DNA of 64,000 bases, from contig OZ218958.1 of assembly GCA_965112735.1 (NCBI GenBank), forward strand, positions 1,674,001 to 1,738,000, read 5' to 3'. The position numbers and the translations under genes were made by a program. This document shows positions 38,581 to 47,554 of this stretch, one piece after another (positions within the stretch are counted from its first letter, which is position 1; each line of letters starts with the position of its first letter). The DNA is from Phaeosaccion multiseriatum (Eukaryota; Protista; Ochrophyta, other classes). Below the pieces are notes generated by a model. That model saw only the letters and a program-made list of their open reading frames with translations, searched no databases and was not told where the DNA came from.

Positions 38581-41500
38581 ATGGCCACTTTCAGCAACGG
38601 TGCCAGCGGCGCCAGCGGCGGGAGGAACCGCTACGACACCCCCCAGCTCGCCTTGTTCGCAGTCCTAGGTCTGGTGCATGCTCCAGGATTTGCTACGCCG
38701 CCCGAATCTGTGGTGGTTGCCTTCAGGAAGCTCTGGGAAACCTATCAAAGCACGGATGAGTTGATCATACGAATGGTGATGGAGCTCGTGCCCGAGACCG
38801 CCGCTGTAAGTGCTAGCAACGCCAAGCTCAAGCTGCTGCAGAGTTACGAGGAGTGCAAGAAGGAGGCTGACAAGCAGGAAGTGGAGCTCACCAAGGCTTG
38901 GCGGAAGCGATGGCAGCGGGGCTTCAACGCGACCATGACAGAGCTGCTGGAGCGATGCAAACACGGTATGCCCGCGATGGACCTCTCTACTGCTGGAGCT
39001 GGGGTTGACGTTGGTAGTGATGACCCCGAAGGCAGTGGTCGTGACGTGGGCGGGGGAGGAGTGAGCGAGCTGTCCGGCCCTTCTCGACTCTCCACCCTTC
39101 CCAAGGAAGACTTGCCTCCTGTCGGGGAGATCAAAGCTCGCGAAGAAATTGTCAAGAAGGTGGAGAAGGCAAAGATGGCGCTCGTCAAGGTGGAGAAGGA
39201 GATCCGGCAGGAGTTACAGAAGCAGCAGAAGGGAACGAAGAAGGCTACCTCTGCCTCTGCCTCCTCCTCCTCCTCTGGGACACCCACCCCGCAAGGAACC
39301 GCTGCCACTGCTGCTGCTGCGTCGGCTGCCAACCTGGCCAGCAAGTACGGGGTGGCGACGAGTGGGAAGGACCTTCTCATGCAGAAATACGACTTGCAGA
39401 GCCATCACGTGCAGCTGAACAACGCCGTCAACAGGAGGAACGAGCAATTGGGCCGGATGAAACAGACCCTTCGACAGGCGGAGGAGGACATTGTAGACAT
39501 CGTTGGCACTCGCTACAAGAGAGTGTCACTCTTCGTCCACCCCGATAAGATCCGGGCGAGGTACGGTCGCGACCCGACGAGGGAGGACCAAGAGGCCTTT
39601 CGGCTCCTGGAGCTGGCCAAGACCGTCCTATGCAACGCGGTGCAGCGGAAGACGTGAGTTGCTGAGCGAGCGAGACATTTACATTTGACATTTATCATGG
39701 GCAGACAGGAGAGGCGGGTGGAGCTCAACGTCTGGACCGGCCCCTCGTGTTGGTTGGGGGGGTCGGTGGTTGGTTGGGTGGTTGGGCGGTTGGAGTGTTT
39801 GTGGATGACTATTGTTTCGCAGCGAGAAGTGCTGCCGCCAACCTTTCTTCCTCCCATGTTCCCCTCCTCCTCCTCCTCCTCCTCCTCCTCCTCCTCCCTT
39901 TCATCTCCTCACAGATACGTGAAAATGAACGACCACTCGAAGTACATGGAGATGCTCCAGACTCAAGAGAGGGCTTCGGAAGCGCAGGTGGGTTGGTGGA
40001 TGGGTTGCCATGGTAGCGATTGACTCAATCACTGAGTCAGCTCTTCATCCATCTAGAGGTCACAGATGCAAGACTAGAGGGAACGGAACTCAACTCGTGA
40101 GAGGTATATACTCACGATCTCAGTCGTCGTACCCTTGTGTGTGCTCATACACTTGTGTGTGCTCATACACCTGTGTGTGTGTGTGTGTGTGTGTGTGTGT
40201 GTGTGTGTGAGTGAGTGTGAGTGAGTATGTGTGTGTGTATGTGTGTGTGTGTGTGGCCACGCCCACCCCTCTCTTTCTCCTTGATCTCTCTCTCCTGTCT
40301 CTAACCACAGGCCCACCATCCCCTCTTTGTCTCTCGCCGTTCTCTCTCTCTCTCTCTTGTCTCTGACCACAGGCCAAGCGAAACAGCACTCTCCGTCTTG
40401 AGGCAGGCACCCCCGCCCGATGCAAGATTCCCGCGCTGACCAAGAGGGGTTTCTTAACCAAGGACAAGTACGTCGTATCGCTGTACACGCGAGGGGGAGA
40501 GAGAAGATTGACAGAGGGAGAAAGTAGGGAGAGGCAGAGTGCGGGAGAGAGAGAAGGAGGAGAGACGCAGAGTGAGGGGGATAGTGGCGCGTGGCCTTGG
40601 CCTTGCGTACATGTGTTGACCATCTCCGCCTCCCTGTCCTCCCCCCCCCCTCCTCCTGCACCCCCACCCACACGCGCGCACGCACACACACACTCACACC
40701 CACACACACACTCACACCCACACCCACGCACACACACACACACACGCACACACAAGATTCCAGAGGTTCTACGTGTACCTCACTTGCACGAGTAAAGTTC
40801 GTCACTTCACCCTGGAGTACTCCAACAGCGCGGTACCAGAGGCGGGGGGGGGGGACAAGTGGACAAGGATGCCGCCCATCTCGCCGAAAGTGGACCCAAA
40901 TGTCAATCGGAGCTTAGACACGGCGGAGATTGAGCTCAAGCTACCAGTGGGGGATTGGCGACTGCGTGTGTGTGGGGCGAATTGGCTGGGGAATGGGGAG
41001 TGGAGTGTCTGTCAACATGTGGATGTTTTGGACGAGAAGGAGGCACGCAAGCGGGAGCAAAAGAAGCGTGTGCAGGACGCTGCGGCGAAGGCGCTGGAGG
41101 ATCTGCAGCAGGTGAGGGAGTTGGTGATACGGAAGGACTGGGGAGGGAGGGAGGGAGAAAGGGACGGAGGGAGGGAGGGAGGGAGGGAGGGAGGGAGGGA
41201 AGGAACTCATCCTGACTCCTGACCTCATGCCATCGCGTCATCAGCTCAGCTCCGGCTCGGCTCTTCTCTGTCTCTCTGCACCCCTTTCTCTCTCTCACCC
41301 TTGCGGCTTGCTTCCCTCGCCCTTGGGTGCTCACATTCACGCTTTGTTTGGCTCACCTCCCACATCTCCCTACCTCACATTTGTGTTTGTTCTTCGGCTC
41401 CTTTCTTCTTAGGTGATTCCTATTAAGTCAATTAGTGGTCCCCTTTTTGCACCCTTATCACTCCGACCCTTCCCCGCTTCGCTTCGCAGGTGCTCTACAG

Positions 41501-47500: not shown

Positions 47501-47554
47501 TGCGCCATCTGCCGCACAGTAGTGGAGAGCACAATTACTGTGTACATATCTTGA
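38581..47554 (+). CDS. Multidomain protein: J-domain-like (HPD), FN3-like, RanBP2-type ZnF, 4x CCCH ZnF, SAM, C-terminal C3HC4 RING; 13 exons
   Basis: All 12 introns are GT-AG and keep frame. Motifs: RYKRVSLFVHPDK..AFRLL; WRLRVCGANWLGNGEWS; WECTACSLIN..RCNVCQTP; four C-x8-C-x5-C-x3-H; WLSSLNLPQYEARL..GFD..KPGHRIKL; CIVC..LLPCRHLICCSSC..KCAICR. Confidence 0.85.
41582..42000 (+). repeat. Degenerate (GGTGAGGT)n array at the 5' end of an intron
   Basis: Read directly; it starts at the donor CGG|GTGAGG. Confidence 0.85.
46236..46368. repeat. (GTT)n microsatellite, intronic
   Basis: Read directly. Confidence 0.95.

Follow-up and report, generated by a model that had tools for sequence, protein, structure and literature searches.

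The window analysed here, a stretch of 64,000 nucleotides (nt) of genomic DNA, comes from the stramenopile alga Phaeosaccion multiseriatum. At positions 38581-47554 of its plus strand it carries a locus in which 13 exons join into one open frame ending in a RING domain. On balance, we favour the reading that this locus is one gene for a large, lineage-restricted, predicted RING E3 that belongs with the RNA-binding ubiquitin ligases. All of its domains are known and so is the class; the combination is new among what could be searched. A preliminary description of the locus had proposed an RNA-sensing, chaperone-coupled ubiquitin ligase. To read it as an RNA-binding-type ubiquitin ligase is fair, because one frame combines a RING E3 module with a SAM domain and a CCCH zinc-finger array, whereas the chaperone coupling stays a hypothesis.

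The 13 exons and 12 GT..AG introns give an open frame of 4,770 nt, i.e., 1,589 codons and a terminator, which no earlier stop codon interrupts; the exons can thus be chained in frame from an HPD tripeptide to the RING, as had been claimed beforehand. The frame starts at ATG 38581, with an in-frame TAA 3 nt ahead of it, and ends with a TGA at 47554. G is found at position +5 in 12 of the 12 donors, the figure for the region's GT sites as a whole being 41%, and ten of the donors have T at position +6; since the splice sites were picked by eye, this donor consensus is supportive and constitutes no unbiased test. In the frame of the model, GC content at third codon positions (GC3, 0.58-0.92) exceeds that at second positions (GC2) in each exon. 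Reading through, an in-frame stop is met inside 10 of the 12 introns, and introns 3 and 7 end before the first stop is reached. The microsatellites of the locus are all intronic, with the sole exception of an (AGG)n run that codes for poly-Gly. By sequence logic, the 13-exon gene model is real. Its exons and domains are listed below, residues of the predicted protein being given as aa.

38581..39653, + strand: exon 1 (aa 1-358), N-terminal region of helical/coiled-coil type that includes low-complexity stretches and closes with a J-like segment; 358-codon open frame, GC3 0.73 vs GC2 0.45, donor GTGAGT
39505..39651, + strand: J-like segment (aa 309-357), HPD = aa 320-322 at 39538-39546; its R-x-x-Y end runs into exon 2
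39915..39987, + strand: exon 2 (aa 358-382), acceptor CAG, donor GTGGGT, in frame
40373-40467, + strand: exon 3, together with exon 4 aa 383-532, beta-rich and FN3-like, then a charged helix
40757-41111, + strand: exon 4, the other part of aa 383-532 (beta-rich, FN3-like, then charged helix)
41490-41582, + strand: exon 5, first of exons 5-8, which form an in-frame GT..AG chain and encode a helical region (aa 533-703)
42491-42562, + strand: exon 6, helical region of aa 533-703
42715-42990, + strand: exon 7, HEAT/ARM-like part of aa 533-703
43256-43327, + strand: exon 8, end of the helical region of aa 533-703
43635..43929, + strand: exon 9 (aa 704-802), holds the RanBP2-type zinc finger
43794-43853, + strand: RanBP2-type zinc finger (aa 757-776), W-x-C-x2-C-x3-N-x6-C-x2-C; Pfam Zn_ribbon_RanBP (PF00641) 31.5 bits vs cut-off 27
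44270..44897, + strand: exon 10 (aa 802-1011), CCCH finger 1 and the first three Cys of finger 2
44494-44553, + strand: CCCH finger 1, C-x8-C-x5-C-x3-H, whole within exon 10
from 44848 (exon 10), His to 45158 (exon 11), + strand: CCCH finger 2, completed by splicing
45149..45412, + strand: exon 11 (aa 1011-1099), His of finger 2 (to 45158) and first three Cys of finger 3 (from 45363)
from 45363 (exon 11), His to 45854 (exon 12), + strand: CCCH finger 3, completed by splicing
45845..46144, + strand: exon 12 (aa 1099-1199), His of finger 3 (to 45854) and first three Cys of finger 4 (from 46095)
from 46095 (exon 12), His to 46390 (exon 13), + strand: CCCH finger 4, completed by splicing
46381..47554, + strand: exon 13 (aa 1199-1589 and the stop codon), provides the His of finger 4 (to 46390) and carries linkers rich in Ala/Ser/Gly/Gln, the SAM, a poly-Gly/RGG tract, an acidic tract and the RING
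46871..47065, + strand: SAM domain, Pfam SAM_2 (PF07647) 27.6 bits vs cut-off 20.5 and SAM_1 (PF00536) 24.5 vs 23; about 110 residues ahead of the RING
47396..47530, + strand: C-terminal RING (C3HC4), 13 residues before the stop; Pfam zf-C3HC4_3 (PF13920) 45.1 bits, E 8.7e-12, cut-off 27

The eight zinc ligands of the RING (aa 1542-1576) follow the pattern C-x2-C-x11-C-x-H-x3-C-x2-C-x6-C-x2-C, which is cross-brace spacing, and its best PDB matches are cIAP2/cIAP1, MIB1 RING3, XIAP, CGRRF1 and MYLIP. With the 45.1 bits against zf-C3HC4_3, this bears out the C-terminal RING E3 module of the preliminary description; judged by its sequence, it would be an active C-terminal RING of the cIAP/MIB1/XIAP type. 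For the SAM domain, the best PDB matches are Caskin-1/2, ANKS1A/B, SAMD5 and Eph receptors, with E-values down to 8e-12, matches that lead to polymerising SAMs, and we assign it to the protein-protein interaction type as the predicted function. The domain itself, which lies above the Pfam cut-off, had been recognised correctly; the RNA-binding option offered alongside is not supported, as the nearest SAM domains (Caskin/ANKS1/Eph) are of the protein-protein type. Between SAM and RING, an (AGG)32 run at 47227-47322 in exon 13 encodes about 30 Gly with interspersed Arg (RGG-like). Length variation of this coding microsatellite is likely.

The four CCCH fingers, located at aa 877, 995, 1083, and 1183, all read C-x8-C-x5-C-x3-H and lie within a repeated module that has a PDS..E..P motif ahead of each finger and H-x-P-N-x3-Y behind. 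Fingers 2, 3 and 4 are each interrupted by a phase-2 intron one codon past the third Cys, and their His is contributed by the next exon. That position and phase of the intron are common to the three fingers is good evidence for exons 10-13 being spliced as drawn, and equally for an origin of the finger module by tandem duplication. The queries for Pfam, structure prediction and exhaustive search were exon pieces. On such pieces, Pfam zf-CCCH (PF00642) gave 15.6-17.5 bits, below the cut-off of 20.5 (16.9-17.4 bits for exon 10, 15.6-17.5 bits for the truncated finger of exon 12), fingers 2-4 being intron-split and hence scanned in truncated form. In the PDB, the finger in exon 10 has a weak match to finger 3 of Yth1/CPSF30. 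C-x8-C-x5-C-x3-H with aromatic/basic residues between the Cys is the classical RNA-binding form. For the fifth finger, of RanBP2 type, the PDB matches in descending order are RanBP2/Nup358, ZRANB2, Nup153, TAB2 NZF and HOIP NZF, separated by no more than a few bits. The ZRANB2 finger is RNA-binding, the NZFs of TAB2 and HOIP are ubiquitin-binding; because all of these score similarly, the RanBP2-type finger cannot be counted as RNA-binding. The number of five zinc fingers given previously is therefore right (four CCCH plus one RanBP2), and RNA-binding type can be kept for the four CCCH copies with their exact spacing, whereas the RanBP2-type finger is as near to nucleoporin and ubiquitin-binding fingers as to RNA-binding ones.

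The N-terminal half is harder to classify. In its J-like segment, the HPD tripeptide stands between the putative helix II and helix III stretches and is aligned to the HPD of both the DnaJ profile and the Sec63 J domain. The helix II stretch also has basic residues in register with J domains, and the same register is kept by the F/A/L pattern of helix III and by the terminal R-x-x-Y, to which exon 2 contributes the Tyr. Among PDB sequences, the Sec63 J domain matches best (E 0.038), and the top Atlas language-model feature match is a J-domain cluster (0.89, 179 shared features). We consider it reasonably probable that the HPD segment is descended from a J domain, the source being probably a Sec63-like J domain with a long loop, as predicted from these alignments. 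The likeness to the Sec63-type J domain takes in helix II, HPD and the long loop that leads to helix III. It differs in that the E-value is just 0.038, helix I is not recognised, and transmembrane segments and Brl domain are absent here. Retention of J function is less likely than J-domain descent, and coupling to Hsp70 via the predicted HPD segment is possible. Another J-like stretch, suspected by eye at aa 20-60 and lacking HPD, was dropped, as Pfam gave no match to it.

Several points tell against the favoured reading; a first group concerns the HPD segment and its surroundings, a second one, given further below, the coherence of the locus. Pfam DnaJ (PF00226) reaches 18.3 bits on the whole of exon 1; with a 104-aa piece as query the score is 21.4 bits (E 2.8e-4), and both values lie below the cut-off of 27.8. 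The match spans profile positions 18-60 of 63 only, so that positions 1-17, which comprise helix I and the beginning of helix II, are left without a match, and NCBIfam has no match to the J-like segment. AlphaFold2 was run in single-sequence mode, i.e., with no alignment, and without the part from exon 2; predicted local distance difference test (pLDDT) values were 52 for whole exon 1 and 73 for a 73-aa piece. In these models the helix II stretch appears as coil (short model) or as the end of a long helix (long model), and Foldseek and VIA-align matched them to generic helical hairpins only and to no J domain. Finally, the N-terminal 700 residues show no significant family match.

The 18-21 bits with profile positions 1-17 unmatched, the blank NCBIfam result, the coil in the pLDDT 73 model and the generic hairpins all speak for a different account of the N-terminal half, in which one gene encodes a real RING ligase while the HPD segment is a degenerate remnant or a chance motif ending a coiled coil, and Hsp70 coupling is absent. 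We take this to be a serious possibility, if short of an even chance. Opposed to it are an E-value of 2.8e-4 that is calibrated against the whole Pfam library, the joint J register of HPD, basic helix II residues, helix III F/A/L and R-x-x-Y, and the fact that PDB sequence and Atlas feature searches both rank J domains first; moreover, the fold test was a weak one, given the missing alignment and exon 2 part. Of the J-like domain suggested beforehand, the HPD in register and a partial DnaJ match are retained, whereas the score below the Pfam cut-off and the unmatched helix I speak against it; as to whether the HPD region folds as a J domain, the J fold was not reproduced in the single-sequence run lacking alignment and exon 2 part. 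Chaperone coupling is put forward as a hypothesis only, because the J match is partial and sub-threshold, helix I is missing from it, and the models did not reproduce the fold.

Two further parts of the N-terminal half carry labels from language-model features only, FN3-like for exon 4 and HEAT/ARM-like for exon 7, which serve as leads and nothing beyond. For aa 383-532 (exons 3-4), the ten best family-carrying Atlas feature matches share the fn3 family/clan with a score of 0.91; the features of exon 7 lead to HEAT/ARM clusters (0.93-0.96, low recognition). Pfam and PDB sequence searches of the FN3-like and HEAT-like parts yielded no match.

That the locus is a single transcription unit is likely, as far as splice logic can tell. 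Exons 3-9, 11, and 12 have no upstream in-frame ATG of their own and would therefore have to be joined to earlier coding exons. The second group of contrary points starts with the public sequencing runs. Four of them contain the locus, all from one sample, and none is an RNA run; in their contigs over 39400-45399 (6,000 letters) the introns are covered with 0 differences from the window, and thus the four runs represent genomic DNA. Joints listed for these contigs were rejected, since their 19-24-letter sides at microsatellites are repeat artefacts. Nor did word, exhaustive HMMER, metagenome and viral searches with exon pieces reveal an ortholog. When exon 1 is left unspliced, it meets a stop (TGA 39655-39657) that overlaps its own donor; unspliced exon 9 meets a stop at 43935, 6 nt into intron 9, and an in-frame ATG (44095) lies ahead of exon 10.

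A split of the locus is thus formally possible. It would mean that at least two neighbouring genes were joined by eye: an N-terminal protein with coiled-coil, J-like, FN3-like and HEAT-like parts, encoded by exons 1-9 or by just exon 1, and an independent zinc-finger-SAM-RING ligase that would start from ATG 44095 or 44122. Such an arrangement, which we regard as quite unlikely, would fit the two unspliced stops (TGA 39655-39657 and 43935), the in-frame ATGs present in introns 1, 9 and 12, and the circumstance that neither RNA nor an ortholog ties the halves together. However, only 40-160 nt would then separate genes of the same strand, and both candidate stops, 39655 and 43935, coincide with a consensus GTGAGT donor. 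A protein starting at 44095 would have to traverse about 28 CTC units, read as poly-Leu, which resemble the pyrimidine tracts at the 3' ends of other introns of this locus. Furthermore, exon 2 provides the R-x-x-Y end of the J-like segment, and the folded-domain parts have a GC3 of 0.70-0.80 in both halves alike. A difference in GC3 between the halves (0.73 vs 0.61) was rejected as evidence for two genes, as the gap vanishes when only domain parts are compared. Intron 1 (39654-39914) has a length of 261 nt, a multiple of three, and contains no stop in the exon 2 frame apart from the TGA overlapping the donor.

About as improbable, in our view, is that the finger array senses no RNA and belongs to a ubiquitin- or protein-directed scaffold ligase, whose NZF-like finger would read ubiquitin chains, whose SAM would polymerise and whose CCCH fingers would bind protein or poly(ADP-ribose): as matches to the RanBP2-type finger, the TAB2 and HOIP NZFs are roughly on a par with ZRANB2, the SAM belongs to the protein-protein type and the CCCH fingers are under the Pfam cut-off, but against this stand four exact C-x8-C-x5-C-x3-H copies with aromatic and basic residues between the Cys, Yth1/CPSF30 as the best, though weak, solved match of the CCCH finger, and the Gly/Arg-rich tract after the fingers.

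Returning to one gene for an RNA-binding-type ligase, we searched for relatives at several levels. The exhaustive HMMER search, for which exon 13 was the only query, covered 1.84 billion representatives and gave 2,512 matches, the best with 75 bits, from metazoan IAP-like proteins and fragments. Every match that was re-scored against the full model proved to cover SAM alone or RING alone, and in the top 151 of the 2,512 no CCCH, RanBP2 or HPD motif was found. Word searches with exon 1, exon 13 and an 83-aa J-like piece brought nothing useful. Metagenome scans with exon 1 and exon 4 revealed no relative; one metagenome locus from these scans (L001) was rejected, as it is a 24-residue seeded match. 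The viral scans were blank. No description of a J-like/CCCH/RanBP2/SAM/RING architecture was found in the literature search. This agrees with the preliminary description, in which the architecture was not recognised; the architecture search called for there, run here with exon 13, yielded domain-level matches only, to SAM or RING separately.

The nearest established systems are ligases that combine CCCH fingers with a RING, a class to which MKRN1 in ribosome-associated quality control (10.1101/516005) belongs; Roquin is likewise a member of the RNA-binding ubiquitin ligase class (PMC4614863). Makorin/MKRN1, Roquin/RC3H, Unkempt and CNOT4 resemble the protein predicted here in having CCCH fingers and a RING on one polypeptide. 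They differ in that the exon 13 search detected no sequence relationship past generic domains, and in that the RING of the algal protein is a C-terminal zf-C3HC4_3 unaccompanied by ROQ, RRM or a Makorin-type motif. Pfam found no Makorin Cys-His motif, ROQ, KH or leucine-rich repeat (LRR) in any exon, and no orthology was detectable with exon 13. To our knowledge, SAM, RanBP2 finger, J-like and FN3-like parts have not been described for the Makorin, Roquin, Unkempt and CNOT4 families.

MEX3 and LRSAM1 share the zf-C3HC4_3 RING at the extreme C terminus, and the MEX3C RING is among the PDB matches; in LRSAM1 a SAM precedes the zf-C3HC4_3 RING, as it does here. In place of the KH domains of MEX3 or the leucine-rich repeats of LRSAM1, for which Pfam gave no match, the algal protein has fingers. 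With cIAP1/2, XIAP and MIB1, which provide the best solved-structure matches to the RING plus its C-terminal tail (E 4e-11 to 1e-9), the similarity is limited to about 60 residues, and BIR, CARD and MIB/HERC2 domains are absent here. The RINGs of cIAP1/2, XIAP and MIB1 are dimeric and activate the ubiquitin-charged conjugating enzyme (E2~Ub).

For the N-terminal half, a comparison with known chaperone partners is of interest. CHIP/STUB1 and DNAJB2/HSJ1 link Hsp70 to ubiquitination, and DNAJC17 and DNAJC21 link a J domain to RNA binding. CHIP consists of a tetratricopeptide repeat (TPR) domain plus a U-box, and DNAJB2 has ubiquitin-interacting motifs (UIMs) and no ligase domain. The logic proposed for the algal protein, Hsp70 with ubiquitination or J domain with RNA, is alike, its J domain being putative; we know of none among CHIP, DNAJB2, DNAJC17 and DNAJC21 that combines a RING with a J domain.

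A working scheme for the predicted ligase can be outlined as follows. The C-terminal RING of cIAP/MIB type would recruit a charged E2, and the SAM of Caskin/Eph type may self-associate and so cluster RINGs and finger arrays. Four tandem CCCH fingers on long low-complexity linkers would bind single-stranded RNA or a ribonucleoprotein (RNP) with avidity, to which the linkers and the Gly/Arg tract could add multivalency. The single RanBP2/NZF-type finger may bind ubiquitin, Ran or RNA. Partners or substrates would be selected by the N-terminal half with its coiled coil, J-like HPD segment, FN3-like and HEAT-like parts. If still working, the HPD segment would dock Hsp70-ATP and put a chaperone-held client beside the ligase, which is the least certain step of the scheme. 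The role in RNP quality control or antiviral defence that had been suggested for the locus is not supported and is graded here as speculation.

The most far-reaching version of this scheme is a ligase with a working J domain of its own, in which Hsp70 is brought by the HPD, in cis, to a RING E3 that is polymerised through its SAM and bound to RNA, such that Hsp70-held proteins on RNPs or stalled messages would be ubiquitinated directly. We rate it as unlikely. If true, working J domain and RING would form a one-polypeptide counterpart of the CHIP-Hsp70 partnership; a description of a J-domain/RING fusion was not found in the literature searched. If transcribed as drawn, the locus would represent a new architecture among RNA-binding ubiquitin ligases, and it would offer a natural test of a J domain wired directly to a RING, i.e., of chaperone triage and ubiquitination without an adaptor.

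Some features of introns and neighbouring genes remain to be mentioned. Intron 5 (41582-42488) consists nearly entirely of microsatellites. Its 8-nt unit GGTGAGGT is repeated 53 times in an array that starts at the last base of exon 5 (41582), directly ahead of donor 41583; a (GAGT)n array (42029-42220) follows, and then (CCCT)n up to the acceptor. Each GGTGAGGT unit is donor-like, and the array could offer many out-of-frame alternative donors. Of the remaining intronic repeats, (CTC)28 at 44149-44233 ends 36 nt before the acceptor of exon 10, and (TTG)45 at 46235-46369 ends 11 nt before that of exon 13. Translated, both appear as long poly-Leu frames in the mechanical list of open reading frames (ORFs), and it is at repeats like these that the short-read contigs of the public runs break. 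Head-to-head with the locus, an uninterrupted 522-codon ORF occupies 36495-38063 of the minus strand, about 500 nt from ATG 38581, with a GC3 of 0.61 and ankyrin-like repeats seen by eye. The downstream neighbour (about 50600-53550, plus strand) is an intron-split, type II glutamine synthetase-like gene, according to motifs in its ORF translations, and its intron at about 51000-51850 contains a long array that translates into PTLPY repeats.

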